Part shown: piece after piece, positions 12,558-40,542 of the stretch | How positions within the stretch are numbered: position 1 is the stretch's first letter | How the letters are laid out: the number at the start of each line of letters is the position of its first letter | Assembly (NCBI RefSeq): GCF_964204865.1 | Contig: NC_135260.1 | Location: 10,354,001 to 10,418,000, forward strand | Length of the DNA stretch: 64,000 nt | Direction of reading: 5' to 3' | DNA from: Styela clava | Taxonomy: Eukaryota | Translations under genes and position numbers: made by a program | Notes under the pieces: model-generated | Told to the model about the DNA's origin: nothing | The model's database searches: none | Seen by the model: the letters and a program-made list of their open reading frames with translations, nothing else

Positions 12558-12571
12558 GTTACCATGGTGAC
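12558..12571 (+). promoter_or_regulatory. RFX X-box with adjacent forkhead-like site (copy 2), about 1.1 kb upstream of the TRP ATG
   Basis: Duplicate of 10599-10612. Confidence 0.55.
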
Positions 12572-13678: not shown

Positions 13679-16600
13679 ATGGCAAAAAGAGTTCACCCTG
13701 GTAAGTCTAAATTGCATATTATTCACATATTGTGACTAAGTTTTGAAGTTTTACAAAAATCTCATTTGAATATAATATGCTGAAAAAAGATAGCAATGGA
13801 ATCATGAAATTCATTTTCATAAAATATTCTGAAATGTCACGTCCGAAATAAGAGTTATTTTATTTTAAAAGGGTATTTAGTATTTACAAAATATTAATTT
13901 TAAAAATGGAAGAAAAAATAGCTATCGAACACACATCAAATGTTTATTTTTGTTCATTTAAAAAATCTTCTATCATATCAAACTTTATACAAAGAAAAAC
14001 AGTCACAAATAAATTCACCCACAATTTATCGTGATACAACATTATCAAAAAATTATGTCAGGGATTACCTAAGCTATGAGCTCTAGGTTAAACTATACAC
14101 TTTATATTTATATGTTGACTTATAAAGTAAATAACAGTCTTCCTTATATTGAGCTTACTTAAAATCTACTCTGAATTAATTCATTTTTTGTAGAATTGTA
14201 TTAACATAAAAACTATCGTACTTTTTCTTCAGAAGGACAAGAAAATGATGCGTTTGAGCATGAAGAAGCCTTTGGAGAAATGGATGTAAAAAAAGAAAAA
14301 AAGGTAAGCAGTTTATTTGGTGAAAAATGGTTGAAGCGCTAAACTCGACTATGATGGCATCGTAGGTTAAAATCTTGAGTACTGGTCCCATGTCCACGAC
14401 CTAAGCTGAGTGTAATAAATTGGATAATACCTACTGAACTGAGAATATTCTGCTCCTTCCAAATTAAAGTAGCTCAATACTGGTAGTGGCTGCTTGTGCA
14501 GAGCCTTGTTCAGAGCAAAAGTCATATAAATACATTGCATAGTACAAAATTGCTCATTCTTATCCATTTTATCATTTATATTTTTCATTTAATTCAGTTA
14601 ATAAATAACATCCGTTTAATATTTTCTTTATTTGTAGTTCTAATGAGTTTTATCACACCTCATTGTACTTGATCAATCAAGTTTACGATATGTGATATGT
14701 GATTGTAAATTAAAGAGTCATTTTTTTGCAGAATGGAAACAAAGTGAAACATACCACATTCCAAGATGTTGTCAATCTTGAACTACAAGCAAAAGCCGCA
14801 GGAAAAGAATGGCATCATTTCATTACGAGAAAAAGAAAATTTTTTCGAAAAGCTGATTCGGGTATGTGTGTGGATGCCTGTGCTAAATTAATCATTAAAA
14901 ATTGAAATTAATAAATACTGTGTCGTTTTTGAATCTCAAGAAAATTCCCTTCACAAGTACAATGATTGGACTTGAATAGAGTAGTCAGTGTTTCCCAAAC
15001 TGTGGGTCGCGACCAAGCGCGCAGCCAGGATTTTCAAAAGGGGGGGTTTCGTAATCATAAATTCCCATTGCGATCTGTAACAGTCTTCGCATTACGCGCT
15101 CGGTAAAGGGACGCCTTTTCAGCGTATAATGATTATTCTTGTCGCGTGAAATATTCAATCTCTGACAACTACAAAATTCTAAAATGTCTTTATATATTAG
15201 TTTAATTGTGTCCAACGTAACTCGCGGTTGCTTTTTCTTACGTCAAAATTAAAACATTAGTTCTCTGAAATGACACGGTGATCGGTGGACATAAAAACAT
15301 GAGATAAACGGTGTATTTAATTTTAATACGTATTTTTGGAATCTTGCCAACTCGTTATCGCCGTTAGAAAAATCTCAATAACTGATATAAAATACCGAAA
15401 AGTACAATTTTATTTCGTACAATGAAAATGCATATGAAGTATATCGTTAAATCAAAAATACATATTCATCGCCGCGATTACGCCACTTGTTAAAAGAGCC
15501 GACGTTTACAACGAAAAATGATTTTTCTGTTGTGCAAAGTAATCAATTCGTGACCGATAAGGGCATATTTAAAATGTCTTGCTTCATTAATTTAATTGTC
15601 TTCGATTTAACCAGCGTTTGCGTCGACAAAACAAAACAATTTTTTACAATTCACAATTTTAAAATACCTCGGCCATTTGCCGACATAAAAATAAAAATTT
15701 GTGGTAACTGCCCGTCGCCTATCATATATTGTTTTGATCCGTATTTTTTCTATTTTGCAAATTCGACAAATTTGAGATGTGCTTGTAACATTGACTCCGT
15801 TCAATCGCAATGCTGACACTCCGATTATTTTTAAAGCTAAAACCTCCTGAAAAATCCGTAAATCTGCTGTAAATTCTCATGGAGTAAAATTTATTTCAGT
15901 TCAATAAAAATTGATGGATATACTTCGGATTAATTATCTTATATATCATCACAAACCGGGAAAAAAATCGCGTTTTCAACCTTGTTTAATGATAACACGA
16001 AAATTTTCTACGACAATTTTAAAGTAATGGATAAAAGGCAAATCCCACCCACAATTAACCGTGTTTCGATTTTAGTGACGGTATGTTCCTAAACGGCGAC
16101 CAAACATAATGTGCGCCGTAGGCACACGAAATTTTGCGATTTTGCGACTAGAAAAGCGTTTTTAGACTGTCGCCGGGACTCAACAAAACTCATTGATTAC
16201 GGTTTTATTTTTAGTATTTTATAATGCCGCTTTTCAATCAAATTTAGATCGCGGTTTTACTCCTTCTTTTGTCTTTAGAACCTCGCCACCGATGAACGTA
16301 TAATAACTCACGAATTCACAATTCCGTGCAAAGTACAAAAATAAAATAACTATCATGTTTATCGTGGCACAAATTTATGATTTAGAAAGAATAAAAACCG
16401 ACGTAAGGGCCCGTGACCCCCATAATGAAGATATTTTGGGGTCGCCAACTTTTATTAAACATGTGCAAACATGTCACTAGAACTTGAAAGTGTAATTTGT
16501 GCTGGTTGGGTATTGTCAAATGCAATTGAATGATAGTGTTACGAGAGTCGATAACATTTTCCTATTTATAGCTTTTTTGCTGATGTTACATCCGATAGTT

Positions 16601-19600
16601 GACCCTATTCTTTATCTTCTCGTGAGTACCTGCAGGCTGAACCAGTGGTCCCAATTCCTTGTCTGCGAACCGAATTTTTGCCAGACTGCAGGAAATTGTC
16701 TTTTTTTATTTATTTTGCTACCAATGTGATCGCTCAGTTATGGAATACAAAGCAGCGTTGCTTTATTTGGCAATTGACCCTAAATTGAGTGTTTGACATA
16801 TATGTTAATATTGAATGTCGAGTAAGCACGCTTTTCAGATTTCTATCCGTTGCGAAAGCGTTTCGTTAATTCTGGGTCAATGTTCAACGTCCACGTAAAT
16901 GTAACAACTACGCACCAACCTTTACCAAACTTAGTCGATACACAGGTACATTGAGATAATGGACCTTTCCCCGACCTTTGACCCCCGAAAACTTCTCCCC
17001 ATACTTTACCATTGGAAATTTTTTCGGTGCTATTTTAAGAGTGCTTTTGCGAGTTGGTGCCTGTGAAATGGGGTATTTGTTTCAAACCATCATTATGATT
17101 CATCGCATACAACAATCTGTTTTTTAAAAGTACTGTTAAAGAATTTTAGCCTAGTCTATCACAGCTATTTCTACACTAATTTTTATTACTGCAATCAAAT
17201 TAAAACTCCTAGGAAGACAGGGTGACCATTGAATTATCTGATTTACATTTAAGTTTCCAAAACACAACTGAAAACTAACGAATAGAGTTCAAAAATGCGA
17301 AAACGAGGTAATGTTTACGACCACGCTTGAAAATCTGTCTGAGTGAGAAAAGTGTCTGAGCGGATGCGAAAAGGGAGCATTGTTTCGTCACTTTTTGCAA
17401 TTTGCTGATAGGCCAATGTCACGAAGTAAACAAGGAAGTCGATGCTCGGGGAAAGGTCCATTGAGGGGAATATATTGATTTTCAAAATTGTAGAACTTTT
17501 CTGGTTTTGGGGACTCCAGTATCTGTAGTCTGAACTGATCCCACACCTTCCATGATTCGGGGGTTGGGCCATGGGTCATCATATGATTAAGCTGTCTAGA
17601 TGGCTTTCCTCGTTCTCAGAATAAATATGTAATTCCTATTCTATTCTATCCAATTTAACTCATGTTTACACCAGTATTCTCGAAGTCACAGGGTCAAGTC
17701 ATGAGTTATTTAGTCCTCAAGTCAAGTTCGAGTCTTGAAGTCAATCAATCGATCTAATCTCCAACTTGAACCCCACATATCGTAGTCGTCACTGTCAATC
17801 ACAGTGATTTTAAAGAATTTTAACATTCCTAGATGTGAGTTCCATGCGTACTTATTCAAGACTGACGGCATTCCAAGAAAGAGAACTTGGACTTGACATT
17901 GAATCAGATGAGGATGATGGACAACTTCCAGCGAGTGCACCAAATGGGGCAATACCCTCAACTTCAAAACAAGGTATTTTATTTTTTCATCGATTTTTGT
18001 ATGTTTTTTATCAGATAGGATAGGATAAGATTTACATATTTATCTCGGGGGAAAGGAAAGCCGATAAGATGGCTTAACCATATGGCGAACCTCGGCCTTT
18101 CGTCCGGTTACCAGTCTATGTCGGGTATGGGATCAGTTTTGGTTATTTGTTTTTCGGAAGCAGGGACTTGATGGTGGAGGAATCCGTAACCGAGCAGCGG
18201 TTACATGAACCACCCTACGACGGCCCACCCTATGAGTCCAGCAATACTCTCGCACATAACTGCCCCGCATGATTATTCGAACCTGCGAACTCACACAGGG
18301 TAATCAGAGATGCGGTAGCGAGCGTATTCCTAACGCTTAGCACGATGAGCCACACCGCCGCGTCTATCGTGCGCAGTGTCACAGATATCTAGTCTGGTTT
18401 CTTCCCTTCCGGAGTAAAGGAATATACTCATAGAAACAGACATAAAATCAACATGTAGTACTTACTTAAAAAAGGCGCTTAAGATTGAAATTTTAAACTG
18501 CTTTCTGCTGTCCTCTTTATAGACGCAATAATCATTGGGAATCACAGAAATATTGATTTGTATCAAAAAATTGATAACAACTGTTGCCTGCATAGATGGG
18601 TTTCTGAAGATGTTTTTCAAAATTCTTGCGGTACTTAACGCCTCTAATATATATATACAATTTTATTTTATACTTATTAATGGTACTAAAAATTTTGATA
18701 TTTCAAAAACTGCTTATTTAGAAAGACTTGATAATAGGAAATGCATAATGTTGTGACTTTTTCCGTTATGTTATGTTGCTGTTGTCTGTGATTATGTATC
18801 ATAACGTTCATTCAAGTTCTGTATGTTCCCATATTCAAATACTTTAATATCATGTATCAAGAAATTAGAATATAATTTTAGTTCCTATTTCCAATTCACT
18901 TTAATGAATATTACCAAATTTTGAAAAGTTTATTGTATAAATATGGTAATTTTAATGATTATAAGATAATTATTCTTGAAAAACATTTTCTTAATATTTG
19001 TCTGGTGCAAAATACTTGTTTTGGTTACTTCTTTTAGTATTCTTTACCTTGTGTGATATCTACATGTAGGCTCTGTAAACACTTCCAATAATAAATAGAA
19101 CGACATAGGGTATTCATAATCTTCAGAATGCGTTCCAAAGCAAACATAGCGATTCATTGATGTTGTGATAGAATGTTTGGATAAGATGTTTACAAAGTTT
19201 CAACACTGTTAAACTTTGTTCAATGTTAAACTAACATAGAAACTCTCAAGCGTTTTTGCCATGTGAACGACCAAACTAAAGCGCTTTCAATTTTGTAATT
19301 CAATGTCCTTTATTTATTGGAATACTCTCCTCATATGGTTCTGAAAGAAAAGTTTTTGCTTGAGATTTCTATTGTTATATTTATTCATACGGATTAATCT
19401 TTGTTACTGTAAAGCTTCATACAATACAAATACTGCTGCCTCATAGCTGAAATATATATAATTATAACAGTAATAACGGTATTCAGGTACCATTATAGTC
19501 AGTCGCCTTTTATATTCATCAGGATAAAAAACCAAAATTGGCAGAAATGAAATTTCTGTAAACTTTTTAACTTTTCCGAATTAGGTATAAGCATCTATAT

Positions 19601-22600
19601 TGTGTTTTGACTGTTAAATTCCTTATCTGTCATTTATTTTGTTCTAGACTATTATCTTAAACACTCTAAACCATTACTTAATTATATTTTTATTAAAGGG
19701 TATTGCAGGCCATCTTTTTTTTTTCTATTTTCTATCAGACTTATGTTATTACTGATTGGAAGTAAGATATAAAATCTGAAAAAACATGGAATTGCAACCA
19801 ATTTCAAAATTAAATTTTTCATCCAACTTTAATAAATCTTTTTTCTTTCTTTCTACTTTTCAGTTGACAGAAGCAAAATAAGGTCATTGAATAAGAAGGT
19901 GATCGGTCATTTTGTATCACTCAATCAACTTCCACATGAAAGTGCAGAGGTAGGTGTGTCATCTTCACATATATTCAATCCAGAAGCGGAACTGTTAGTG
20001 GTACCTGGAATACAAAGAGCTACATTTATTTGCTATCTATTCCTTTTCTGAAGGACTAACTCCTTTTTCTATGCTTGTGTATCTGTATGTATATAATGAA
20101 AGAATGCTGTAGCTGCTGTGAAGATAACTATTTTATGTGATTCAAGAGCCTTGCTGTACATTTTTACAAATATATTTCTCTAACTTCTTTGCCTGACCAA
20201 TGTCAGAATTCTTCAGAATGAACTATATCTGAGAAAGTCTGACTTCGGTCAGACGAAACGTTATAGAAATATGTTTGTGTTAATTGTGCAGCAAGACTCT
20301 TGAATCACTCAGAATAATTATTTGTTCACATGACATTTGAACCAAATTTTGCAATTTAAGCTAACACATATTCCAAACCATGATATTTAGAAAACTAGAA
20401 TTTTGTTTGACACAATAAATCAATAAACTTACAATATTTAAACCACACACAAATTATGATTTACATTATGTAGATTCCATGTTTATGAAATCTTTTCAGG
20501 TAAATCTGGAGCTTTTATCATCATTATTTGCACAAGGAGCTGAGGCTAATTGCTGTGATAGATATGGACAAACGTTATTACACGAGGTAAGATTTCATAT
20601 TTTGTATATAATTTTATCTGCATTTTTTATCCGTTTTTTAGTTTCAACTGTCTACTTGATAAAATTATTCTGAACTAACGTATTTTTATCAAAGTTTAAA
20701 TTATTAATTTATAAATAATCATTAATATTTCATAGTAACGGTTGTCAAAAAAGTGATAAAATCATTCTGAAATTTCCATTTTTACATTATTTTGGGATGA
20801 AGCGAAAAAGTAATACCACTCTCGCTGAATTAGTATATACAGGGTGTCTCAAACGTAAGTATACCTTTTTAATTTTGAATTGCTTCTCAGGTACTTATCA
20901 TAGAGCGTTCATTTCTTCAGAAAACATAGTATGGATAAGTAGTAAAATTTAGGTATTTTTTGCATTTTTTTTATCAACCACAGAATGACAAGGAGAATAA
21001 ACCAAAAATGAGGTGCAAAATTGCTGTTTGGCAGGAAGCTTATGAATCAGTAGGGCAAATTCGCTCCTCTTTAACACAGAATTTGGAATTATTTGGCTCT
21101 GAATGTTTTCCTCAGAGCGGGCTCTCCTTGGTCTTCCTGATCTATGTGCGTCAACTACAGATCCAGTTTTCATAAATTTACGATGAATTGCATAAATTGT
21201 TCGGGTAGGAGCCAAATCAATTCCAAATTCTCTGTTAAAGAGGCGCTGAGTTGTCGGGTAGGAGCCAAATCAATTCCAAATTCTCTGTTAAAGAGGCGCT
21301 GAGTTTACCTCACTGGCACCACATTTCTTGGTTTAATCTCCTTGTCCTTCTGTGGGTTGATGAAAAATGCAAACAATACTAAAATTTTACTACTTATCCA
21401 TACTATGTTTGCTGAAGAAATAAAAGCCCTCTAATAAGTATCTGAAAAGCAAATCAAAATTAAAAGTCTATACTTACTTTTGAGACACCCTGTATATCGT
21501 GTATAAACATCATAAAAATAGTTACGGTAAATGCAATTTTTTATGCGATAAACAAGGCAAACTGCCTTTGCTGGGTAAGAACATACTATATTTTTTGAAA
21601 TTACTGTAATATAGTTTGGTATTGCACACCCAATTGATGACACCCTCGGTAAGACACTGGCGGTTTTCATACTGATTGAGTGCAAGGGATCAAATATGCT
21701 TGATCAAATTTAGGTTTGCTGATGCAGATTTAACAAATTCATCTGTTGTTTGTGACATTCCTTGTGTGAACATTCATATTAGCTCATGAACCTATCTCTA
21801 CTCATGTTTTGGTGCCTCTTTGGTATGCAATCTCAGCGGTTCTGTGATCTCAGTGATTTTAGTTGGGGATAGGAACTGAATTCCATGAGTCTTTATGAGA
21901 TTAAACGCATACGAAAGTGGCTCCACTTGTTATGAGATTGAGATCACGTTAAGCAAGTGGCAACCTCCTATTTTCCTTTTTCTAAAGGAAGTTCTGTTAA
22001 CTTTTATGCATTCTCTATTGTATGATATCCAGGTAGCAAGACTTTGGCATGTTGATGTTGCAGAGTTTCTCATTGCTAAAGGAGCTGATATCAATCGTTC
22101 TGATCGGTTTGTATCATTTTAAGTTATGCGAGTTGTGATCGAGAATATATTTATCTGTACCATCCAGAGAAAATGCATATGACCTATAATTACATTAGAA
22201 TTAAAGTGATTACTCTCCGGACAACATAATTCCATGTATGATTAAGCCATGTTATTGGCTTTCCCTCTTCCCCAAGATTAATATAAAAACCCTATTCCAT
22301 TTATTTATCCGAGAATCTTTAACATCGAATCCTTGAAATTCGAAAACAAAAGTGTTGAGAGTTGATATTTGGATATTCTGCCCCTTTTTGTCAGACACAA
22401 TACAAATATCTTTAATTGTGTGTTTTAAAATGAGTTATGAGAATCAAATTTAATTCAAGACAATTTTTTATAACATTCTCTTTACCCCAACTTTCAACTA
22501 GGCAACTTTTACTTTAGTAAGATACTATTTTTAGAAGAAACAGAATTATTTTCATATTAAATTTTACTTTTTTCTCAATTTTTACTTATGTAGCTCCTCT

Positions 22601-25600
22601 TATTTATAGATACGGTAGGACACCAATTCATGTTGCTGCGGCTACAGATTACCCAGAAATGATAGAATTTTTCGAAAAAAGTGGAGGTCAGTTATTATAA
22701 ACTAAAGATGTAAACAAGATTAATGTGGATTGTACTTTGTATATTACCAAGAAATATCACCCTTCTGACAATATCTAGATTTGTAATCTTCATGCAACGA
22801 ATCGGACTTATTATAGAAAATATGTTACTTATGCTTGGCGCCATTAGTATGCTCGGTGACGTTAGCCAACCATCATAATATTAATTACGATAGTTCGGGG
22901 GACATTTCAGTGCATATTGTTTGTTGCAACAATTTATAATGAGATATCCGTGTGTGGAACGGTGCAGTTTAGCTTAAGATTTCTTTATACAAATATATTT
23001 TATGTTATCATGATTGGACATAAAGGGGACCAATGGATTGTTTTTTTACGCCAACTAGGAGTACTTCTGTCGTGTTGTGAACATGGCCCATATTTTCCAT
23101 GTTAAAATGAAGTTTCATATATTTATCAGCTAATATTGAGGCAAGAACAGCAGAAGAATTGCAAACTCCGCTACATTTTGCTGCTCGGAATGACGCCGTC
23201 GATGCTTGTAAAATCCTTGTTAAACTTGGAGCAAAAGTTGAAACTTATGACTATCGACGAAGGACACCACTTCATACAGCTGCAGAACTAGGTTTGTAGG
23301 TTGTATAACATTTTGGGAGACCAATTTTCAAATTAACAACACTATACTTTTCTGTATTGTGTGCAATATGAATCCGAAATAATATACTTTCAAAAATTGT
23401 CAAATTGCATTTAAATAAATCAATATAACAGTGATGAACTGTGTTTTTTTATCTGTTTTCTATTGAAATTCCAAATAGAAATTGGTAGAAATTTATCTGA
23501 TGGTTTTTTTCAGTCATCTAACTTGACTTCTAGAAACAATACTTACCTAATTAATTTATTATCTATGACAGTGGTTCTCATCGGTGGTTCGTACCCCCAC
23601 AACGAAAATATTTAGGGAGAGGAAGACTTTTTATTTTAAATTTTGCAATTATGAGTTGTAAACAAATTCGAAAATGTATACCTTTGATGCTCTGGTTTGC
23701 AAAATTTAGCTAATTAATGGCAATCCTATACACTAGAACAGCGTTTCCCAAACTGTGTCCCAAACTGTGAGCATCTTCCGTGTGTTCCGTGGAAAAGGGA
23801 TCAAAATTCCTACTAAATTTGCCATGGCCATGTCGGGATTTAGGAGTTGTCGCCCGACGGGCGACCATTCAGTGTTGTGTTTTTGCGACGCATTTGGCAA
23901 CTCACCACGGCGCACAGGGACCGCGCCCCTTGGGAACCGCTGCATAACACTTTTCTTTATCAACTTTACCCTTTCGTTTTTTGGTGTTCCCCGAGGCGAG
24001 ATAAAAAGCGTAAGTGTTCCGTGACCAAAAAAAGTTTGGGAAACGCTGCACTAAAATACAGAGTGACACAATTTAATGCATAAGAATATAGGATAGGATT
24101 TACATATTTATTTCACGAGAGAAGAGTCGATAAGAGGGCTGAGTCATATAGTGAACCACGGCCTCATACAGTTACCAATCCATGTCGGGTATAGGATTAG
24201 TTAGAAAGGTATTTGTTTGGAATGCATGAACTTGATAGTGGAGGAATTTTACGTAATTTATGCAATCCTCTCGCACATGATTATCTCCCACAGGATTCGA
24301 ACCTGTAAACCCACCCAGGGTAATCAGATGTGCGGTAGCGAGTGTATTCCCTCCTAACGCTCAGCACGATGTGCCACACTGCTGAGCCAAAATGTTTGTT
24401 TTCTTCAAAGGAAAATTAATGTTATCATTTATTCAAGTTCAATAGCATATTTTCCAATGTTTCCGTGTTTTTTCCAATCTTATCGATACAAAGATAAATT
24501 TCTGGCAGATAAATTCTCATATCCTCCTCATTTGAAGCAATTTCTGTGTGCAGTTCTTCGCAAGGTTGGGAACCGCTGGTTTACGATATATCAGAATCCA
24601 TGTATGAATCAGTCTTTCTCAAGATAGTTTTATAAAATCCGATTTTTCAATTTATTTTTTGTTAGATCGCAGTGAGACAGCTAGATGGTTGGTGGAAAAT
24701 GGAGCAAATGTTGGAGTTACCGATGATTCTGGTTTGTCTTGCATGACGCACATGATAACAAAGATGGGGCCAGTGGTGAGTTGCTGTGAATGTTTTAAAT
24801 ATCAGAAGTTTATATTAGGGTATTGCATTGATTTTGAAACTTCTGGACTCCTAGCCATCATAGAGTTAATTTAATGGTTTGCTCGATAAGTGTCAGAGCA
24901 ATCACCACTTGATTATATTGGTTATATTGATACATCCTTGATTATACTCACTCGGCAATATGGTGCATCATGCTGAGCGTTAGAAATACGCTTGGTACTG
25001 CATTTTTGATTACCCTGCGTGCATTCACAGGTTCGAATCCTGTGAGAATAATTACGTGCGAGAGCGTTGCGGGACTCCCCCCTCCTTGCAGGGTGGTTCT
25101 AGTTTTTATTCTAGAGGTTTGACAATTAGGAGTTTGAAATATTGACTCCCAACTCTAAAGAATTCTATACTTTCGGTTCCAACCCCCGATAGTTCGAAAC
25201 TTTAGTTTAATATCTTTGTCATGATTAGAATTTTTATAATGTACGTCTCAGCAAAGTAAAAATTCAGTTTTGTCAAATCTCATACTCTTGTTCTTCATTT
25301 ATTTGACAGGCAAGAGATGCATTGGACACATTTCATAAAATGGATAGAACAAATAGAAGACAATATTTTCATCTGAATTTGCTGGAGCATGATATAACAG
25401 GTAAAATTCTAGATTATCATCGTTCATCTCACACGCAATGTCATTAAATTTTGCAATTTGTAGAGTCACACCGTGTGTGATAGATGTTGTCCTTCACAGT
25501 TGCAATTAACTATACCATGTTATTATCATACATGTAATAAACTTAGTTATACATGATACTTTTGAGCCATTATTAATTAAATTCAATTTATAATGTATTA

Positions 25601-31600: not shown

Positions 31601-34600
31601 AAGCTATATTTTATTCTTAAAGGTTTAACTGATAAGGGATCATGTGCACTTCCTAATGCATATGTTAACAATGCTTGTCTGAGTGTCTGGGTCAACAGAA
31701 TATTTGTCTTGAACATTATCATGATGTGGCTGAGACTGATGAAAAATATGAGATCTTTCAGGTACCGTAATTATGTTGGTATTTTTTTAATGAAATTGGT
31801 AATAAATGACTTTTGATAAATTTGATGAAAACGCACTCAAATGAAATTTTTTGGGTGCTCCAGAAGTAGCAATATGGAGGTATCTGATTTTGTTCGCCTA
31901 CTTTACATCAAGTTGTGTACAGGGACTGACGTCTAATTCACTTCGCTAACACAGACAGACCCCCAACTAGTATTAAAACTAATATAAAAAAGAAAAATCG
32001 GAATAAAATTATGGCCTAACCCTAATCTGATACACATATTACGAGAGTACCATTTTTTGAAGCTCGCCAGGTGGCGCATCGTGCTAAGTTCTAGGAATAC
32101 GCTTGTGACTACCCTGCGTGTGTTCGCAGATTTTTTGGTATTTTTTTATTTTATATTGAAACTTTTTATGTTTTACAGAACTCTTGGACCGTTTGTAGTA
32201 ATGTTGGGCAAGATATTCTATGACATTCTACGCTTCCTATTCTTATATTTTGAATTTTATATTCCCTACGCTTGTGCGTTTTGGATGATATTTGGTAAGC
32301 TATCTTACTCTGTTAACTTATGAATGCCTAGAACATTTAGTTCCCTATAAACTGGAAGCTGTTTCAGGGTAATTAAATATGCGGTTTTGTGAAATTTGGC
32401 TTTTCAGAAAATTGGTCCGAAAATTGCTCTGTACAAGCAGCCACTGGTATCTCATGATACTTACCGGTAAGGATACTTATTTTGGAAATGCTGAAATTTT
32501 TCCGGTTCAGCATTGCCTACCCAATTTATTACACTATGGGTGAGGCGAGGGCGTGACATTTGAACCTGAGCTGTGTAATCTCGGATGCTTACACAGAACT
32601 GAGCTTTTAACCGCTAGGCCTCATTAGGTAATAAGTCAAGAATTATATCAATCAAGTCAGTAAAAAGTCAAGAAGTCAGAATATATTTCAAATCTACTTT
32701 CAAAATGTGATGTATGAGTGTATTTCTGTTAAAAGTTTCATGACACGTATATATATTTGAGCATTGCTCTCTTGTTGTAGTTACACTTTCAAAGAAAAGA
32801 ATTGTATTCTTCACAAACCACACTTAAATTCATGAAATGATACACTGTATTACAGGAGATGAACCAAGCATACAAAGCATGAGCACTGTGGATCAAATGT
32901 TATTTTCATTGTATCGAATCACATTGGTTGATGAATATGAATATGATCAAATGCATGCCTATGATGTTGTCATGACCTATATATTATGTGGAACATTCCT
33001 TGGTATCAGTGCCATCTTATGCATCAATTTATTTATTGCACTGTTGTCTGATACTTTTCAAAGGTAATTGCATTGAATCCAATAATTTTTTTTTTACAAA
33101 TTTTAAGTTGAACCACAGTTTTTACATTTAGTTAGTATGAATACCATTCAGGGACGTTGGAAATAATTTACTATCGACTCTGACTACGAGATGAAAAAAA
33201 TATTGACTCTCGACAGATTTGAAAATTTTTTTGACTCCAACCCCAGCTACAATCTATCAATTGGTTCCGCGGTGTGCAGCATTGTGCTAAGCGTTAGGAA
33301 TACCCTCGCCACTGCATCTCTGATTACCGTCCGTGGGTTCACAGTTTCAAATTCCATGCCGAGATAGTTATATGCGAGAGGATTGCTGGACTCCTTGCCG
33401 TCGTAGGGTGTTTCACATAACCGCTGGTCGCTTACAGCTTCTTCCACCATCAAGTCCATGCTTCTATAACAAATTACAGCCTAACTAAATATGTAGTTTC
33501 TAGCCTATGTAAATCGTATCCTATCTTATCAAGGAAATCAAATTTCGACAATGAATTTCAACTTTGGCATATGCAAGTCTCATTTAGTAGAATGTTAGGA
33601 ACGCTTGGTCAACATACTTTTTTGTTTGAGTAGAAAAGTTTGCTTTGTTTATCCCCATAAAAACTTTTGGCACCTATTTCTTTCTCTGGGAATGGCAGCA
33701 TTTCGACTGCGGCTCGACCCTGACCCCAATGAAAACATGCCAAACTCAGCAGCCCTGTAATTCATATTTGAGTATAATTTTGATAATTACCTATGTCCAG
33801 AGCTTTTAATTTTTAATAGAATTCAAAACTAATACAATTCACTCAATCCTTGGTGCTATTATTACTAATTTTAGTTTAATTTTTTTAGAAAAAGTACATA
33901 ATATAGGATATTTGGAATCAAAAATGAAGAACAAAATAGCATTTTAGCTTATGCAGTATTTTGATTATAAATATTTCGTACTGTTAATCGCTATGTACCT
34001 TTTTTAGAGTATATGACAATGCGAACGCCAATGCAGTAATGCAACAAGCAATTCAAATTCTGTCAATTGAGGAAAACTTGAGTCATGGACAAAAGGAAAG
34101 ATTCAGGAGGTCGGTTTGTGTATTATTCAATATTGAATGATTCAAATTATTATTTAAAATATGATAATCTATCTATTCATAGGAGACTGCACTGCTCGGC
34201 AGAACGTTGCATCGTGCTAAGCATTAGGAATACGCTTGCCGTTGCACCTCTGATCACCCTGCAAGGGTTCGCAGGTTCAAAACTGGCGGGGGATAATTAT
34301 GTGCGAGATGATTGCTGGGCTTCGATTGGTTATGGCTTTCTCAACCTCCAAGTTCATGCATCTGAAAACAAATAACTAGCTAACTAATCCCCATATCCAA
34401 CATGGACTGGTAACCTGGATGAGAGGCTGTGGTGTGCAATATTATTAAGCTGTCTTATTGACTTTCCTCACCTCGGGATAAATATGAAAATCCTATCCTA
34501 TCCTTCTCGCAATGAACTTAGCTGTGCTTATAACCGGAACACTGACGATATACTAGTAACATGGACCAATCGTGATTTGAAATTTTGTTTGAAAATAAAT

Positions 34601-37600
34601 TATCACAGAGGTATTAAAACGATTCCTTTTTTTTTAGTTTCATTCAAAAGAAATGCAGTCCATTAGAAGAATATTATGACGATGATTTAACGACATCCCA
34701 GGAAGATAATCTGAAGAAAGTTACTTTTCAAATCAAAGATCAAATGGAAGAAGTAATTGAACATTTAAGACTTGATGAAAAAGAAAGACAAGATCTGGTA
34801 AATATAATAATTATTGATCATAAAACACATTCAGAATGTTTATAATTATTTAGATGAGGTGTTCAGCCCTTTGCCACGAACAAGGCTCAGTATTAACAGT
34901 TGATGGTATGAGAGAGCTACCCTATTTTTTAAAAATATTTTTAATTTGATATTGCCCAACCTCTTTACTGTATCCTCTAATTCGATTGTAAACAGATATT
35001 ACCCGTGGACCTAATAATAGCTCGGAGAGCGATTCTTGCTCCATACAAACTTGCATGAAAAATTTGTTGCGCACTGGTTCCAAATTACTTACTCCTTACT
35101 TATTATTATTCTTCTTACTTATTATTACCGTAAGGTATATTGGATTTTAGTAAAGTCATGACAAATATTAGTTTTGTGTTGTATCATATTTTCTTCCCCT
35201 AAGAAAGTACAGGGTGTTCATACAGTCATTTAATTAGTCAACAATTAATTTACAGTCAACTAATGATCGGAATATAAAGATGAAGTAAAGGAATTTTGGT
35301 ACTTTCATAGTGTGTGTGTACCAGGTTAGGGTTAGGTCATAATTTTATTACGATTTTTCTCATTTTAGTTCTATTACAAATTCGGGGACTGCCTGTGTTA
35401 GCCATGTGAATATACCCCTGCTCATAAGTTTCAGTCCTTTTACACAGCTTGATTTGAAATAAACGAACAAAATTAGTTACCTCCATATTGGTACACACAC
35501 TGAATTTCAATAAAACAATCCCGGTTGAGATATATTGAGAAATGACTTTATACAAAATTTTGAATGTAACAGGACTTTATGAATTCTCTATATCAGATAA
35601 CCATTAATGAAGCATATCCTTGTATCTAATTGCAAGGTATATTTCCAAGTATAAGGCATGGCAAATTGTGGTACACAGTTTTCGTTAGGCTGCTACCATA
35701 CTGGTTTATCTATATTCCTCTGCCTTAGATTATGAAGCAAGGTTTATGGACGTTAAAAACTATTTTAGTTATGTTTTTAACAGGTGTTCAACGATTCAAA
35801 GCAAAATCAATAATACATAAAAACAATAATATCAAAATTTGTTTTCTAAATATTGTAGTTTTTGTTGAAAAGTTGATTTTTTGACTAGGAGAATCATCTT
35901 CATGCTGATATTTTGTCTTCAACTGACCATGTAATACAAAATCTGAGACCACGAAGTCGAATGGTATATTGTTGTCCAACTTGATACTAACATATCACAT
36001 GTTTGCTCTTGTTATCTCAATGCAATCATTTACTAAACAATTTATGGATATTTTTTTCTGAACAGTCGGCAAACTTGATTTTTGCTTCAAAATTACTTTT
36101 TTATTTCAGCGATGCAGTAAAATATAAAATAAGTTTTATTCTCTAAAATTTGATTTGAATTATGATTTTACTCTGAGAATAGCAAATTTTACAGCCAAAT
36201 AACAGTGATTTTAATTTGAGTTCTGAATTGAATTTGAATCGTTCGAACATACACCATAATTCTATCTGATTCAATACTTTTATTTTGATACTAGTTAAAA
36301 ATTTATATTGATTTAATAGTTATACGGCTATTTATGGATATTCAATGGTTCATGTTCGGGATAAATATAAATTTTGGGCTTGGTGTATGCGTGTGATGTG
36401 GTCTCATTTTATTAACCTCTACATTTTTGTATTATAATGCTTTCATACTCATTCATTCTAGCAACTAACACATTTTTTCAACTTTAGAAAATTTGATTAA
36501 TATCTTATGCTTGACGGTTGCCCCATTTACTAATTACTAGAAACAATCCATCACACACTGATTTTAGTTCTCAGAGTATGTAGGTGTGAATAGTATATGG
36601 CAGGGGTGCAAAAAATGATGATTTTTTGTCTCCCAGAAATATCTAAAAATCAAGTAGAAATTCTATAAATACCAAATTACTAGTAAGTAAGATGGTACCT
36701 TTTTATCAATGATAGGCTTTAAAATTTTAAGATTTCATTTCAGATTGGATAAAACTGTTTTGATTTATTTGACAGATAATTGTTGGCTTTTAATTTTATA
36801 CCTGGTTTGAATTGCAAATTAAAACTAATACAAATTAAAAATATATTTTATATTATGATTCTGACTATAAGATCTTACTTGATAACTGTCACCTATAGAT
36901 TATAGGGTCGCCTTGATTTACTTTAACATATTTTTTTGTTTAACTCAAATAAAATTAATTTTTAATTTTCAACTCAAAATAAATGTTTCAACTATTGCGT
37001 AGAATTTGAAAAACCCAATTCTTAACACAATATTTTTAAAGTAACAATTTATATACATTCAGGATGAACGAAACTCATCTCGATTCAGTCAATATCAAGA
37101 TTATGGTGAGTGATTTTGATTTATTATATTTTTCTTTTAGATACGTCGTTTACCGCATTAGTCCTGGCTATATCTCTTACCGGGTAAATCTTTTTTACAA
37201 TGGAAAATAAGCTCTTATATATTTACTTCTTTTGATAGTAAAAACGATCATCTTTTAAACCAGGGGCCAAAAAATTTGCCTACCTAGACTGGCGGGTCAA
37301 GTAAGTGTGACGTCAAAAGTTACAATTTATGAACAAAATTTTATTTACAGTGTTACAAAAGCGAAATTGAAAAACAATAAGCCTTGTGCCCAAAGTAAAT
37401 TTAATTGCAATCTCAACTAATTCCCCAAGCTATTTTTTTAGCTGAATCTTCAAAATTTGGTTTTAGTTTGGTTGTGGCAGTATCAGGCGGGCCAGACTGA
37501 ATTACCCAACGGTCCGGATTTGGACGGCGGGTCGTAGTTTGCCCGTGTGAATTCTAAATCATCTTATGCAAGTTTTTATTTTATATTTTGAGTTACGCCT

Positions 37601-40542
37601 CATTTATTTTATTTTATACTACAGATAATAAAAAAGGAATGATGGGAAGAACTGGAATTGCTAGGTTGTCATCTGATATAACCAATATTGTCAGTACAGT
37701 CAATAATATGCAGGTTAGAATATGGTGAAAAACTGATTTGGTTTCATTTAAAGGCTTTCTCTGTGATTGCCTTGTTGTACAATTGGCCCACGAGACGAAA
37801 AAGGTTGGGCAGGCCTGCCTTACCGTATTTCAATTTGAAGTTCATGTAACTTTTTATAAATAAACTAATTGTATTTCAAATATTTTCCAGTATTTTTATG
37901 TTTGAAAGCTGGACATTTATGAAGTTATTAAAATTCTTAACCATGTAATCAAATCCAAAATAGTCAGAACCCATTATTAATCAAATTCTAAATTGTAGTT
38001 TGGCCATGATAATAATCTTGAGAAGGGATCTGAATATGTAAAGGAATCAAGTAATGTCCTATAGTTTTCAACAATTCCTTTATTACAATATTGATAGACA
38101 AATTCAGGAATTGCTTAGAAACGTAAAAAAAAAAAAATTTTAATTTTTATGTATATACCATAAAATAATTTTCAAATATTATCCGCATCAAAATCAATCA
38201 CATAAAATATTTTTGTCACCATATTTTCTTCTACTTTTTCGATAACATGTTTTGTTTCTTTTAGGAAGGAAATGTTGAAACTTTAAATAGAATGCAGAAA
38301 GATTTAAAAGAAATCAAAAGTATTCTTCGCCATTTGATAAGTTCAGAATCTCAACTAAGAAAACCAAGAAAAAAAGATTCGGAAAGTCATCAAAAATCAG
38401 GCAGTCTTCCACCAGCTTCCATTATAGATCCACCAGTGTAAGTTTTTTTATTTAAATACTTGTTTTAATAAACAAGTTTAATTTTAATTTTTAAGTTTTG
38501 ATTTTTTTGTCAAGACTGCATATTTCTAAAAAAAAATTTTTAATTAAAAAAAAGAAGTAGTATTAGGGATAAGAATGAGGTTTCATTTTTTCTCTGGGTG
38601 GGAGAAAGACGATGAGACGGCCTTATCATATGGCGTTCCACGGACTCTCATCCAGTTATGTTGGGTATGGGATTGGGGTTAGTTAGCGAGTTACTTTTTT
38701 CAGATGCATGGACTTGATGGTGGGGGGAGCCGTAACTAACCAGCGGTTATGTGCACCACCCTACGATGGTGAGGAGTCCAGCAATCTTCTCACATAAAAT
38801 TATCCCCCATGGAATGCCCCAGGGTAATCAGAGATGCGATGGCAAGTGTATTCCTAATGCTCAACACGATGCGCCACCCGTTGCGCCATGTAGCCTACTG
38901 ATAATAGTTGGTTATCCATTACTTCAATCAGGCGTGGTTGAGATATATTAATCTATTAATGGGTTAATTTACGGCTCTGATACCAGGCTTTTAAATTTTA
39001 GAAATTTATTTTAAAGGTCTGAGGTGATTACAATTTTTCAATATAACTCCTTTGATATTGCTTTAATGTTTTGTTTTTTGTTTCTTCCCAGCTTCCCTCT
39101 TGAAATTCGAACTCTTCCTCCAATACAAGACCTTCGACAAAAAAGATCTCAAGAATTTGAGCCAATGTATGTAAAACACTGCATAAAATTATGGATCTTA
39201 CACTTTTTATTGTGTTATAATATCTTTTATAATCTGATGTGAATTGGACTTTCTAATGCCGCGATATATCTTTACTGATTTGTTCTGTAAAGACTATGAT
39301 AACGAATGCAAAAAAATTTTAAGATTTTTTTTAAATAAATTGCTGATCTCTAATCTATGAATTTCAACACCTGTGAGTGCTGAAAATTTTTGTCTCAAGG
39401 ATATAAGAGCTCTTGGTACATCAGTCTATGTTCTGTTATGACTACATTTACTTGGGGAACTTGGTCAACTTGAGCCAACTTAGATGTGGAAATGTGTTGG
39501 ATTTGCTGAAAATGCTGAATACTATGGAAATGGTGATTAATAAAGACATAAATTATTTATAATGATAATCTTTATCTACCCTGCAGAAGACATCCATCAT
39601 TGGATAGAGTGACAGCAGATGATGTAAGAAGATCTGTTGAAGATAATTTAATGAGAAGATTAATTCATTCATCACAAGATTCAAGAGCAAGCAGAAAGTA
39701 AGATGTTTTTATAATTTCTGTTGAATACTATGTATGTTTAGTAATTTCAAATGAGTGATATTCAACTTGGAAGCTTTTTTGTACACTCAAGGTTAAAAGA
39801 TAGTAAAGTATATTGTGTATGCTGTATATTTTTCAACTCAATCATCAGAATATACAGCTGAGCATCAGGAAAATTTTATCATGATCACAGTTGGCGTGTC
39901 TACATGACTTACCTACTTGACTCTGTTTCACAGAGATTCTCTTTCGCTTTATTGAGTTTGGGTCAAAACACTATGTGTGTCTATGTATGATGGCGATTCA
40001 TACTATATCAATTCTTTTTTCTAACTTTTCGCTATCCTCTCACTACTCTCTCTACTCTAACTAATTTGTTGAAAAATTGCAGTATTCATCATGATTAAGT
40101 TCTTTTAGCAAGAAACAAGGGGGAAGTTTTTTACTTATTTTAAGAAATTAGAAGTATTTCTGCATACTCTCACAAATATATTTTCGTCTGATTAATGTCA
40201 GACTTCCACAGACAAGCATAAGTCAACAACATGTTCAACAGCATGACATGTACGGTAATTGGTTCAGCATGAAATTTGAATAGTAAAATTTCTAATGATT
40301 GTAATCTTTATTTCCTTGTGAATTCCCTATGACCAGCAATACAACTTTAATTCGATTTCAGTGCAAGACAAGATGACTTAGATTTTGAGATGACTCTGTT
40401 GCCTGGGTCACCTGCTCGAAGCACACCGAGACCAGACCTGTCAACCAGTTCAAGAACGCCACCACCTAATCCAACTGTGGCATTTCAGGATCCAGAACAG
40501 TCTGATTTGAATATTGGAGACAGGGGATCATCAAATGTGTAA
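13679..40542 (+). CDS. Ankyrin-repeat TRP cation channel (TRPV-like / TRPVL-type candidate), about 1051 aa
   Basis: Phase-consistent exons: 13679-13700, 14233-14303, 14732-14861, 17833-17973, 19864-19949, 20500-20586, 22033-22106, 22610-22686, 23130-23291, 24666-24775, 25310-25400, 25975-26007 (optional), 27389-27417, 28420-28511, 29289-29400, 29623-29793, 30301-30417, 30915-31020, 31623-31761, 32179-32294, 32856-33063, 34008-34109, 34638-34797, 37063-37105, 37625-37713, 38265-38437, 39092-39166, 39587-39697, 40202-40249 (optional), 40362-40542. ANK motifs GQTLLHE, GRTPIHVAA, QTPLHFAA, RTPLHTAA; pre-S1 IIMHPVILKMLELKWNKFG; S4-S5 LGPFVVMLGKIFYDILRF; S6 INLFIALLSDTF; TRP helix MQQAIQILSIEE. The terminal low-complexity exons are less certain than the core. 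Confidence 0.93.
14986..16450. mobile_element. Composite DNA-transposon block (hAT left end plus nested sequence); right boundary uncertain
   Basis: CAGTGTTTCCCAAACTGTGGGTCGCGACC (hAT-type end) at 14986, followed immediately by a different terminus AAGCGCGCAGCCAGGATTTTCAAAAGGGGGGG. GGGGTCGCC subterminal motif near 16440. Confidence 0.45.
16961..17459. mobile_element. MITE with GGACCTTTCCCCGA TIRs and AT flanks (ISL2EU/PIF-Harbinger-like)
   Basis: Perfect TIR GGACCTTTCCCCGA / TCGGGGAAAGGTCC, AT on both sides, homologous copies at 9354 and 11313. The superfamily assignment is inferred from the termini. Confidence 0.8.
18014..18362 (-). mobile_element. tRNA-derived SINE, family A (full length)
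   Basis: Reverse complement of the 48876-49223 element, with (TAGGA)n tail at 18014 and head at 18362. Confidence 0.9.
20117..20330. repeat. About 100-bp-arm inverted repeat made of two Penelope-type hammerhead remnants
   Basis: Arms 20117-20217 and 20228-20330 are diverged reverse complements. The + arm has CTGAGAA-A-GTCTGAC-TTCG-GTCAGAC-GAAACGTT. The - arm has CTGAAGA-A-TTCTGAC-ATTG-GTCAGGC-AAAGAAGTT. Confidence 0.7.
20840..21492. mobile_element. Tc1/mariner non-autonomous fold-back element with transposase N-terminal remnant
   Basis: TA|CAGGGTGTCTCAAA ... TTTGAGACACCCTG|TA with long inverted arms. The minus strand encodes QRLFNREFGIDLAPTRTIYAIHRKFMKTGSVVDAHRSGRPRRARSEENI (HTH plus GRPR). 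Internal 53-bp tandem repeat at 21201-21305. Confidence 0.9.
23739..24048. mobile_element. hAT MITE
   Basis: TIR CAGCGTTTCCCAAACT / AGTTTGGGAAACGCTG; TSD CACTAGAA / CACTAAAA. Confidence 0.88.
24088..24387 (-). mobile_element. tRNA-derived SINE, family A
   Basis: TAGGATAGGATTTACATATTTAT tail through to CACGATGTGCCACAC head; reverse of the consensus. Confidence 0.85.
24953..25100 (+). mobile_element. SINE family A, 5' fragment
   Basis: Head with AGCGTTAGAAATACGCT stem-loop and B box GGTTCGAATCC. Confidence 0.75.
27857..28313. mobile_element. hAT MITE
   Basis: TGGGGTGGTCCAA / TTGGACTACCCTG termini, CGCGGGCC subterminal repeats, exact TSD GTTTAGAC (27849-27856, 28314-28321). Confidence 0.85.
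31272..31562 (+). mobile_element. tRNA-derived SINE, family A
   Basis: Matches 48876-49223 with a short internal deletion. Confidence 0.9.
32500..32620 (-). mobile_element. SINE family B fragment
   Basis: The reverse strand reads GGCCTAGCGGTTAAAAGC (A box) ... CAGGTTCAAAT (B box) ... ACCCATAGTGTAATAAATTGGGTAGGC, similar to about 56660-56785, 57093-57225 and 60555-60640. Confidence 0.55.
33262..33530 (+). mobile_element. tRNA-derived SINE, family A
   Basis: Homologous head, core and ATCCT tail; the 3' third is shortened. Confidence 0.85.
34194..34503 (+). mobile_element. tRNA-derived SINE, family A
   Basis: Homologous head to tail (…GGGATAAATATGAAAATCCTATCCTATCC). Confidence 0.85.
37261..37550. 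mobile_element. Degenerate hAT MITE
   Basis: CAGGGG start; GGCGGGCCAGA...CCGGATTTGG...GGGTCGTAGTTTGCCC right end typical of Charlie-type MITEs; TSD diverged. Confidence 0.55.
38565..38885 (-). mobile_element. tRNA-derived SINE, family A
   Basis: Reverse-complement match to the family consensus. Confidence 0.85.

Follow-up and report, generated by a model that had tools for sequence, protein, structure and literature searches.

Which ion channel does the TRP-like gene at positions 13679-40542 of the window encode, and does it belong to a known family? The window is the whole 64,000-nucleotide stretch of Styela clava DNA analysed here. A sequence-only reading had proposed a TRPVL-like channel that fits no vertebrate subfamily, possibly with a ciliary role. 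Of the TRP families of animals, TRPVL has been studied least. We conclude with high confidence that 13679-40542 (+) is the tunicate orthologue of the TRPVL (= Trpw) group-1 TRP channels, a single-copy, intact and transcribed gene of 30 coding exons.

Gene structure and transcript support

One gene spans 13679-40542 on the forward strand, with 30 coding exons totalling 3180 nt and 1059 codons. Its start ATG lies at 13679 and its stop codon at 40540-40542, and the interval delimited by the sequence-only reading proved exact at both ends. Exon bounds were obtained from tblastn alignments to P0197 (Styela clava "TRP channel pyrexia-like isoform X2"), combined with splice sites and phases. All 29 introns are GT-AG with consistent phases, and none of the 30 exons contains an in-frame stop. 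The window product is identical to P0197 at 1027 of 1041 whole-codon residues (98.7%), the 14 differences being scattered substitutions. The full-length analyses described below (model, structure searches and HMMER) were performed on P0197 as a proxy, not on the window's own joined product. The coding exons are as follows.

13679..13700, +, exon 1: start codon, residues 1-7 (tblastn to P0197; joint 13700>14233 in 4/4 runs; 5' UTR to at least ~13585)
14236..14303, +, exon 2 (NAGNAG acceptor: RNA contigs use 14233, one codon more; P0197 fits 14236)
14732..14861, +, exon 3: N-terminal region (joint 14303>14732 in 3/4 runs; the fourth run has 2 extra letters)
17833..17973, +, exon 4: N-terminal, acidic, low-complexity (joint 14861>17833 in 2/4 runs)
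19864..19949, +, exon 5: helix before the ankyrin domain (tblastn, splice phases, AF2 model)
20500..20586, +, exon 6: ankyrin repeat (Pfam Ank_4, E=6.7e-4)
22033..22106, +, exon 7: ankyrin repeat (Pfam Ank, E=6.1e-3)
22610..22686, +, exon 8: ankyrin repeat (Pfam Ank, E=2.9e-3)
23130..23291, +, exon 9: ankyrin repeats (Pfam Ank_2, E=5e-9, above cut-off)
24666..24775, +, exon 10: last ankyrin repeat (Pfam Ank_4, E=7.1e-3)
25310..25400, +, exon 11: linker with beta-hairpin, model strands 328-331 and 336-339 (tblastn, AF2 model)
25975..26007, +, exon 12: linker micro-exon, 33 nt (tblastn, splice phases)
27389..27417, +, exon 13: linker micro-exon, 29 nt (tblastn, splice phases)
28420..28511, +, exon 14: pre-S1 helix with HPVILKMLELKW (W396 invariant in 62/62 family members)
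29289..29400, +, exon 15: S1, fingerprint position N411 (tblastn, family alignment)
29623..29793, +, exon 16: S2; conservation of E460 and of E463 at least 90% (tblastn, family alignment)
30301..30417, +, exon 17: S3 start, N520 and D523, WNxxD motif (tblastn, family alignment)
30915..31020, +, exon 18: S3 end and cysteine-rich S3-S4 loop (tblastn)
31623..31761, +, exon 19: S3-S4 loop and S4 (tblastn, splice phases)
32179..32294, +, exon 20: S4-S5 linker (G619) and S5 (tblastn, splice phases, family alignment)
32856..33063, +, exon 21: pore helix, filter TLVDEY, S6 with N-L-F-I-A (tblastn, Pfam, family alignment)
34008..34109, +, exon 22: TRP helix, A733 at the TRP-box Trp position (tblastn, family alignment)
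34638..34797, +, exon 23: post-TRP beta-strand 767-770, start of helix 779-827 (tblastn, AF2 model)
35889..35963, +, exon 24: tail (tblastn, splice phases)
37063..37105, +, exon 25: tail, disordered in the model (tblastn, AF2 model)
37625..37713, +, exon 26: tail, start of helix 860-909 (tblastn, AF2 model)
38265..38437, +, exon 27: tail helix passing into a low-complexity stretch (tblastn, AF2 model)
39092..39166, +, exon 28: tail, disordered in the model (tblastn, AF2 model)
39587..39697, +, exon 29: tail helix 973-1009 (tblastn, AF2 model)
40362..40542, +, exon 30: Pro/Ser-rich end, C-terminal S-N-V, stop (tblastn)

A single exon at 32130-32294 with a Phe/Leu-rich "S4" was considered and rejected on the basis of homologues and splice phases. 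Positions 32130-32178 are the noncoding polypyrimidine tract of the acceptor at 32179, and the true S4 lies in exon 19 (31623-31761).

Transcript support came from assembled contigs of four runs, presumed to be RNA, from three studies; these contigs carry no measure of start sites or expression level. The GT..AG joints of introns 1, 2 and 3 are present in contigs of four, three and two of the runs, respectively, and one 3403-nt contig covers exons 3-4. The 5' ends of the RNA contigs lie at ~13585-13619.

Searching the animal's own genome with the transmembrane exons returned, beyond the TRPVL gene, only the TRPV and PKD2 loci. For the tail exons, no relatives were found outside P0197. The only Rfam match in the window is U11, at 42915-43048, with no RNA family within the TRPVL gene.

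An X-box-like palindrome upstream of the gene

Two perfect copies of a 14-nt X-box-like palindrome lie at 10599 and 12558.

12558..12571, no strand assigned: X-box-like palindrome, second copy (not tied to the TRPVL gene; first copy at 10599-10612)

These sites raise the possibility that the TRPVL gene is, in addition, an RFX-regulated channel of sensory cilia driven by an upstream X-box. The perfect palindromes are unique to the locus: the 201-nt segment around them is found at only two places in the 377-Mb genome, both here. The expression of trpw1 in catshark olfactory sensory neurons, described in PMC11979771, would also fit. Against this, both perfect copies are a single sequence duplicated in a 1959-bp tandem repeat, and the motif is not enriched in the window when up to one mismatch is allowed (18 matches against 16.9 expected, with 40 of 100 shuffles reaching 18). 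The nearer copy also lies ~1.0 kb upstream of the contig 5' ends, across a gap (12494-13463) that has no contig depth in any of the four runs and no joint into exon 1. The link between the X-box and the TRPVL gene is thus weak, and we consider ciliary regulation of this kind unlikely.

Domain architecture

The AlphaFold2 model of P0197 (mean pLDDT 74.7, pTM 0.66) predicts a group-1 TRP core comprising six transmembrane helices, a pore helix and a TRP helix. The N-terminus is disordered in the model and is followed by approximately six helix-pair repeats at residues ~125-327, which superpose on designed ankyrin proteins (Z 21, rmsd 1.8-2.0, 189-192 residues). This fits the four full and two partial ankyrin repeats counted earlier from the sequence. 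All five ankyrin-like exon stretches match Pfam Ank models, and only 23111-23296 passes the curated cut-off. The C-terminal tail of the monomer model contains three long helices (779-827, 860-909 and 973-1009), with spacers of pLDDT below 50 between them.

The pore filter reads T-L-V-D-[D/E]-Y family-wide and TLVDEY in the window gene. The window's pore exon matches Pfam at E=1.1e-4, under the cut-off, and the family members P0011, P0193, P0224 and P0180 match Ion_trans at E 5e-16 to 5e-19. In the TRP helix, VYDNANANAVMQQA, the tryptophan of the TRP box, which the sequence-only reading had reported missing, is replaced by alanine (A733), as in 58 of 62 family members. In S6, A716 is invariant in all 62. 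The protein ends in the pattern [S/T]-x-[A/C/V/L/I], an ending found in 31 of the 62 members, from cnidarians to tunicates.

Assignment to the TRPVL family

The fingerprint residues, the phylogenetic tree and the architecture all support the initial TRPVL assignment. The fingerprint row given for TRPVL in Table 1 of PMC9242649 is W - N G phi F W N F I A A. The window gene reads W. N G Y F F N F I A A, matching at 10 of 11 defined positions, with Phe instead of Trp at position 7. The annelid members from Capitella, Owenia and Lamellibrachia match at 11 of 11, and Phe occupies position 7 in all six deuterostome members tabulated. Across 62 sequences the column counts are W 62, N 55, G 61, N 60, I 60, A 62 and A 58.

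The family is broadly distributed. A search with the pore exon returned 174 cluster representatives at E<=1e-3, and P0011 as query returned 1680 proteins at the same threshold among 8000 scored. Named members come from cnidarians, annelids, molluscs, brachiopods, nemerteans, echinoderms, hemichordates, amphioxus, tunicates and non-amniote vertebrates. The best 120 of the 1680 matches include no amniote protein, which describes those matches and is no test of absence. Exon-wise Pfam and PDB searches were insufficient to assign a subfamily, with best E values of 0.056 (TRPV4) and 0.006 (TRPC4).

The tree was a quick LG+G4 search over 69 rows and 749 columns with SH-aLRT support, in which long outgroup branches meet. 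Its outgroups were one TRPV and one PKD2, both from Styela clava; its rows include no TRPA, TRPC, TRPM or TRPN sequence. These outgroups are an Inactive-type TRPV (L001; E=2.4e-150 to Inactive) and PKD2 (L002; E=8e-283), and both fall outside the family clade. Four further loci from a search of the genome for intronless paralogues that might serve as TRPA outgroups (L003-L006) were rejected as other ankyrin proteins, judged by eye from their translations. The window gene falls in a tunicate clade (support 99) that is sister to a vertebrate "pyrexia-like" clade (tunicates + vertebrates 97), and Ambulacraria and Lophotrochozoa are each recovered at 99. The clade that contains the window gene also includes proteins from Nematostella, Capitella, Owenia, Lamellibrachia, Scyliorhinus, Lepisosteus and Xenopus laevis, which may not be the accessions published as TRPVL or Trpw.

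The proposal that the channel fits no vertebrate subfamily is not supported: sharks, rays, coelacanth, gar, teleosts and amphibians all have orthologues, and the vertebrate clade was published in 2024 as Trpw/Trpvl (PMC11979771). In that paper, Mayeur et al. report TRPVL in sharks, gar, zebrafish, lungfish and Xenopus, propose the name Trpw, and describe four predicted ankyrin repeats and six transmembrane helices. The suggestion of undescribed biology is likewise unsupported: the family is published, and public databases already list the 98.7%-identical protein, under a name assigned automatically.

Like vertebrate Trpw1, the Styela protein has a short ankyrin domain, six transmembrane helices and Ala at the TRP-box Trp position. 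It is longer (1059 residues versus 760-893 in the vertebrate members sampled), its helical and disordered tail with a C-terminal S-N-V is Styela-specific, and its S6 reads N-L-F-I-A where the vertebrates sampled have N-L-L-I-A.

Comparison with TRPA, TRPV and TRPC channels

TRPA ankyrin domains usually contain 14-17 repeats, and a coiled coil at the C-terminus of TRPA channels serves tetramerisation. A divergent TRPA member with a short ankyrin domain ("pyrexia-like" or basal TRPA), in which case the gene would have no family of its own, is the closest of the competing family assignments, and we judge it improbable. The automatic names of family members are often "pyrexia-like" or "TRPA1-like", and the best Foldseek matches of the P0197 model are TRPA1 (1.5e-14; TRPV5/6 ~1e-13). 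HMMER aligns P0197 residues 166-421 with TRPA1 residues 507-773 at E=2e-39, covering the last repeats, the linker and the pre-S1 region, in agreement with the TRPA-like pre-S1 recognised beforehand. TRPA1 structures (PDB 7or0, 6pqq, 7ykr) share the group-1 TRP fold, and both proteins have long helices after the TRP helix, predicted here, and lack a Trp within it. Mayeur et al. moreover recovered the family as sister to Trpa, as given in PMC11979771.

Several features speak against TRPA membership. The window gene has ~6 ankyrin repeats, compared with 5 to 17 resolved in the TRPA1 entries matched by Foldseek, and identity in the structural alignments is 14-17%. TRPA1 is absent from the 33 solved-structure matches of the pore exon. 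In S6, Ala replaces the Gly of the TRPA1 N-L-I-G motif listed in Table 1 of PMC9242649. The clade is also kept apart from TRPA throughout the literature consulted, including PMC9242649 and PMC11979771. The separation of the TRPVL clade from TRPA rests on this literature and on these features.

A divergent TRPV channel is less probable still, and we give it very little credence. The S6 had been called TRPV-like on sequence grounds, and among solved structures the pore/S6 exon does match TRPV4 best, but at an E of only 0.056. The transmembrane domain of P0011 matches TRPV6 best (E=1.5e-21), and TRPV6 is also the best whole-architecture match of the P0197 model in VIA-align (Z 22.5, 511 residues, rmsd 7.3). 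In TRPV5 and TRPV6 (PDB 5wo6, 5iwr, 8fhi), as in the model, the ankyrin domain has six repeats, the linker forms a hairpin, a strand follows the TRP helix and the filter contains an Asp. Peng 2015 and Himmel & Cox 2020, the sources for TRPVL of cnidarians and annelids, placed the family as sister to TRPV, as cited in PMC9242649 and PMC11979771.

On the other side, the Styela protein differs from TRPV5/TRPV6 in carrying extra acidic filter residues and a long helical C-terminal tail, at 19-20% identity, and it shares with 58 of 62 members the replacement of the TRP-box Trp by Ala. The TRPV of the same genome, which lies outside the family clade in the tree, scores 505 bits to Inactive and 171 to TRPV5; the TRPVL transmembrane domain (P0011) reaches ~79 bits against TRPV6.

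TRPC channels are characterised by a TRP_2 domain and an EWKFAR-type TRP box. No Pfam TRP_2 was detected in the four family members scanned, and the TRP helix VYDNANANAVMQQA lacks a TRPC-type TRP box. TRPC4/TRPC5 are the best solved match of 32132-32293 (S4-S5 linker and S5, E ~0.006), a stretch that includes 16 intronic codons, and overall similarity is weak. None of the canonical feature sets of TRPV, TRPA and TRPC fits the window gene.

A decaying or untranslated gene copy can be dismissed almost outright. The lack of tail-exon relatives beyond P0197 was the sole reason to raise it, and no support for it was found. The splice sites are intact and 30 of 30 exons open, spliced contigs are present, and the substitutions that set the product apart from P0197, at 14 of 1041 residues, are scattered.

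Proposed channel mechanism

By analogy with TRPV, TRPA1 and TRPC structures, four subunits of the TRPVL protein would form a domain-swapped cation channel, and the conserved acidic filter would confer Ca2+ permeability. The ankyrin domain, beta-sheet and TRP helix may couple cytosolic events to the S6 gate, and the first long C-terminal helix may aid tetramerisation. No solved structure of a TRPVL member was found among the 2026 PDB copies.

On a looser reading, the conserved E-x-x-E of S2 and N-x-x-D of S3 could constitute a putative Ca2+-modulation site. Ca2+-modulation sites of the S2/S3 type occur in TRPC4/5, TRPM4 and TRPA1 structures, and the pattern in the window gene presumably resembles that of TRPC4/TRPC5. 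In solved-structure searches the S2 exon gave no match and the S3 exon only three Cav matches (E 0.07-0.18), with no TRP among them; neither exon recovered a TRPC, TRPM or TRPA1 alignment over the Ca2+ site. Equally loosely, a C-terminal [S/T]-x-[A/C/V] ending might tether the channel to a PDZ scaffold, and the analogy of catshark trpw1 would suggest that the channel acts in sensory cells. In the TRPVL literature consulted, no stimulus, current or other functional data were found for any member.

Significance

What is new here is a tunicate member, with its exon structure, of an already described family, and the picture of that family is unchanged. The mention of TRPVL in PMC9664204 describes no tunicate member. 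Our results show that a single, intact, expressed TRPVL orthologue has been kept in a tunicate. It is placed as the species tree predicts, next to the fish and amphibian clade, which supports a single TRPVL gene in the ancestor, carried on through the chordate stem, with absences confined to later vertebrate lineages.

A more speculative reading, which we hold to be a long shot, is that TRPVL may represent an ancestral channel serving a sensory compartment, perhaps the cilium: Ca2+-permeable, Ca2+-modulated and scaffold-anchored, it would have been conserved from cnidarians to the olfactory neurons of fishes, with a loss in amniotes. The perfect, locus-unique X-box upstream, the conserved S2/S3 acidic site and the C-terminal [S/T]-x-[A/C/V/L/I] ending would fit such a role. 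With the tunicate gene, this ancestral sensory-channel reading could be tested in the simple larva of a chordate. The sensory neurons of ascidian larvae are few and mapped, and the tunicate orthologue could be a practical entry point to what TRPVL senses.

Gene structure and transcripts

The TRP channel gene lies in an AT-rich window (GC 0.29-0.40; N count 0), where stop-free stretches of the + strand at 13.6-40.6 kb encode ankyrin-like and channel-like peptides. Among the proteins returned with P0011, a starfish family member, as query, P0197 (1059 aa), a Styela clava protein whose source name is 'transient receptor potential channel pyrexia-like isoform X2', matched every exon in the window by tblastn. 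It served only as a ruler for exon placing. For 26 of the 29 introns a script yielded a single donor/acceptor pair that preserved the frame; introns 1, 6 and 7 were fitted manually to splice sites and RNA joints. The resulting model, with 30 open coding exons (no in-frame stops) and 29 GT-AG introns, confirms the channel gene that the sequence-only reading had placed at 13679-40542. The ATG is at 13679, the stop codon ends at 40542, and the coding length is 3180 nt, or 1059 codons. Exon-by-exon translation gave 1027 of 1041 whole-codon residues identical to P0197; the window thus comes from Styela clava or a very near relative, and the gene is already public as an automatic annotation. All full-length analyses of its product were performed on P0197 as a proxy.

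One index search over 28400-35000 identified nine runs containing 7-16% of the sampled words, the amount expected from exons alone, and four more runs, from a single sample, containing 77-82%. The nine runs are RNA, at a guess. Contigs were taken from four of these nine, representing three studies, and compared with window 12300-18100.

Splice joints in the contigs (all GT..AG)
13700>14233 (+), intron 1: four of four runs
14303>14732 (+), intron 2: three of four runs; the fourth run has two extra letters
14861>17833 (+), intron 3: two of four runs

One contig, at 3403 nt, approximates the full mRNA in length. Exon 2 has a NAGNAG tandem acceptor (14230-14236), at which the contigs of the four runs take 14233 (one additional codon) and P0197 fits 14236. 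Contig 5' ends fall at about 13585-13619, and depth is zero over 12494-13463 in all four runs. As contigs, these sequences document that the transcript is present and spliced, but they do not fix its true start or its level.

The introns also carry several copies of one interspersed repeat, recognised by recurring similar peptide strings in six-frame translations.

Examples of the intron repeat (both strands)
18050-18390
23750-24060
24930-25120
31240-31560
33200-33490
34170-34380
38560-38950

Neighbouring genes

1744-6500 (+), upstream neighbour with a TLC domain: Pfam TRAM_LAG1_CLN8, E=6.6e-27, at 5198-5437
42915-43048 (+), U11 snRNA gene: Rfam RF00548, 106 bits, model positions 1-134 of 134
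~46200-61000 (+), downstream neighbour: MTP_lip_bd exon, E=2e-20 (60124-60438); Vitellogenin_N exon, E=7.7e-4, below cut-off

The TLC-domain gene, which we take to be of the ceramide-synthase type, probably encodes a ceramide synthase. The U11 gene is full-length and lies 2.4 kb downstream of the channel's stop codon. The gene at ~46200-61000 encodes the microsomal triglyceride transfer protein large subunit.

The upstream X-box

An uncharacterised ciliary Ca2+ channel system had been suggested from this channel taken together with an X-box. In a pattern search of the window the motif matched perfectly at 10599 and at 12558, and allowing up to one mismatch revealed no enrichment (18 observed, 16.9 expected). 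The two perfect matches are one sequence in a tandem duplication with 1959-bp spacing (9075-12992), identical over 200 columns sampled at the X-box and 95% identical over a 300-nt pair elsewhere; the repeat may stem from a recent duplication, or it may be an artefact of assembly. In the 377-Mb genome the X-box segment occurs at this locus only. The copy at 12558 lies ~1.0 kb upstream of the RNA contig ends, and no connection from it to the contigs was seen in the four runs. We consider a ciliary reading of the gene improbable.

Family assignment and distribution

Twelve fingerprint positions are tabulated for each TRP family in eLife (PMC9242649), where the TRPVL row, sampled from cnidarians and annelids, reads W - N G phi F W N F I A A. 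Among the table rows compared here, TRPVL is the only family with Asn at position 3 and also the only one with Ala in place of the TRP-box Trp, which ties the present family to TRPVL. The Styela gene agrees at 10 of 11 defined positions, with Phe replacing Trp at position 7, as in the other five deuterostome members compared. Members from Capitella, Owenia and Lamellibrachia agree at 11 of 11. Counts over A2, our alignment of 62 TRPVL proteins, were as follows.

Fingerprint columns in A2 (n=62)
First columns: W 62, N 55, G 61, Y/F 62
Position 702: F 37, W 22; next, N 60
Position 714: F 35, L 20; then I 60, A 62, A 58

A search of 1.84 billion cluster representatives with the pore/S6 exon (32858-33061, 68 aa) returned 174 proteins at E<=1e-3, of which 54 reach E<=1e-10. 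The top full-length match was P0011, from Asterias amurensis; with it as query, 8000 proteins were scored and 1680 of them fell at E<=1e-3. The best 120 of these 1680 come from cnidarians, annelids, molluscs, brachiopods, nemerteans and a xenacoelomorph; from echinoderms, hemichordates, amphioxus and tunicates; and from sharks, rays, coelacanth, gar, teleosts and amphibians. Within the same 120, automatic names conflict ('pyrexia-like', 'TRPA1-like', 'TRPV3-like', 'TRPV5-like', 'uncharacterized'), a pattern typical of a family that no name fits. The 69 pore-exon representatives of at least 450 aa are, P0126 excepted, 28-49% identical to P0011. P0126 (1997 aa) matches the pore exon in five separate stretches (E=1e-5), showed no similarity to P0011 by BLASTP, and may be a multi-repeat channel-like protein.

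The family tree (69 rows, 749 columns, LG+G4, quick search) tracks the species tree, with SH-aLRT support of 99 for tunicates, 97 for tunicates plus the vertebrate clade, 99 for echinoderms plus hemichordates, 99 for lophotrochozoans, and 99 for cnidarians plus two unnamed rows. Together with the fingerprint, the tree bears out the TRPVL assignment guessed from sequence. Two other channel loci of the same genome fall outside the family, their long branches meeting each other.

Other channel loci
L001:1819-4263 (-), Inactive-type TRPV: 815-aa ORF, E=2.4e-150 to the Drosophila Inactive chain
L002:1289-3799 (+), PKD2: 837-aa ORF, E=8e-283

Both are apparently intronless, which may mark them as retrogene-like copies or as single-exon genes of ancestral origin. 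In a six-frame whole-genome search with P0011, whose counts are lower bounds, transmembrane-exon matches occurred only in the TRPVL gene and at these two loci, and the TRPVL gene therefore appears to be single-copy.

The gene had also been put forward as a candidate for undescribed biology. This is not supported: the family and its occurrence in vertebrates are published, and the protein itself is public as the 98.7%-identical P0197 (1027/1041). Mayeur et al. 2024 (PMC11979771) describe 'a new vertebrate TRP clade', with TRPVL in catshark, Callorhinchus, lamprey, Xenopus tropicalis, lungfish, zebrafish and gar, four predicted ankyrin repeats and six TM helices. They place it as sister to Trpa, not Trpv, propose the name Trpw, and report catshark trpw1 expression in the sensory-neuron layer of the olfactory epithelium. 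The name is ambiguous, because 2026 choanoflagellate papers give 'TRPW' to a different, WD40-bearing family. TRPVL is also reported from abalone (PMC12980990) and from choanoflagellates, filastereans and an ichthyosporean (bioRxiv 10.64898/2026.06.15.732245). In the library searched, 'TRPVL' and 'Ciona' co-occur in two papers, PMC7312350 and PMC9664204; in the latter, the sole TRPVL mention is in the introduction.

Proposed mechanism and conserved sites

By analogy with established TRP structures, TRPVL subunits would form a domain-swapped tetramer, in which the conserved filter T677-L-V-D680-[D/E]-Y would line the pore and S6 would hold the gate. Filter residues are highly represented in A2 (T 58, L 56, V 60, D 56, D/E 58 and Y 60 of 62), and the filter Asp of the window's pore exon aligns with that of TRPV4. 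This Asp and the adjacent acidic residue suggest a cation channel permeable to Ca2+. In A2, conservation is 90% or more at each of E460 and E463 (S2) and N520 and D523 (S3), a pattern we take to be the Ca2+ site of TRPC4/5, TRPM4 and TRPA1. Searches of solved structures with the S2 and S3 exons did not reproduce alignments to such sites, and the S2/S3 Ca2+ site is therefore a putative one.

The Styela protein ends in S-N-V (40531-40539), a plausible PDZ-scaffold ligand. Endings of the form [S/T]-x-[A/C/V/L/I] occur in 31 of the 62 A2 members, from cnidarians to tunicates, against a background of 3.9% per position in the tails; as the A2 rows are related by descent, a binomial value for this excess cannot be read as a probability. 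The ending is absent from most of the sampled vertebrate members and may be an ancestral PDZ-ligand-like feature.

Predicted structure

An AlphaFold2 model of P0197, with A2 as input, had a mean pLDDT of 74.7 and a pTM of 0.66, with pLDDT mostly above 90 in the blocks ~120-340 and 370-770.

Elements of the P0197 model (residues)
~125-327, ankyrin-type helix pairs
328-339, two short strands
386-424, pre-S1 helix continuing into S1
440-486, S2
518-547, S3
586-612, S4
630-654, S5
666-677, pore helix
692-718, S6
722-746, TRP helix
767-770, strand
779-827, 860-909 and 973-1009, long helices with low-confidence stretches between them

Foldseek placed TRPA1 chains at the top (E=1.5e-14), followed by TRPV5, TRPV6 and TRPV3 at ~1e-13, with 14-17% identity throughout. 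The top VIA-align match was TRPV6 (Z 22.5, 511 residues aligned, rmsd 7.3, model 95-774). By itself, the ankyrin domain matched designed ankyrin proteins (Z ~21, rmsd 1.8-2.0). In sequence, the TRPA1 alignment covers the repeats, linker and pre-S1, whereas TRPV6 is the best match for the transmembrane domain. From these mixed matches, the TRPVL protein joins a TRPV-like ankyrin/beta-sheet/TM core with a TRPA1-like helical C-terminus. This combination fits a separate family near the TRPV/TRPA split, a point of disagreement among published trees.
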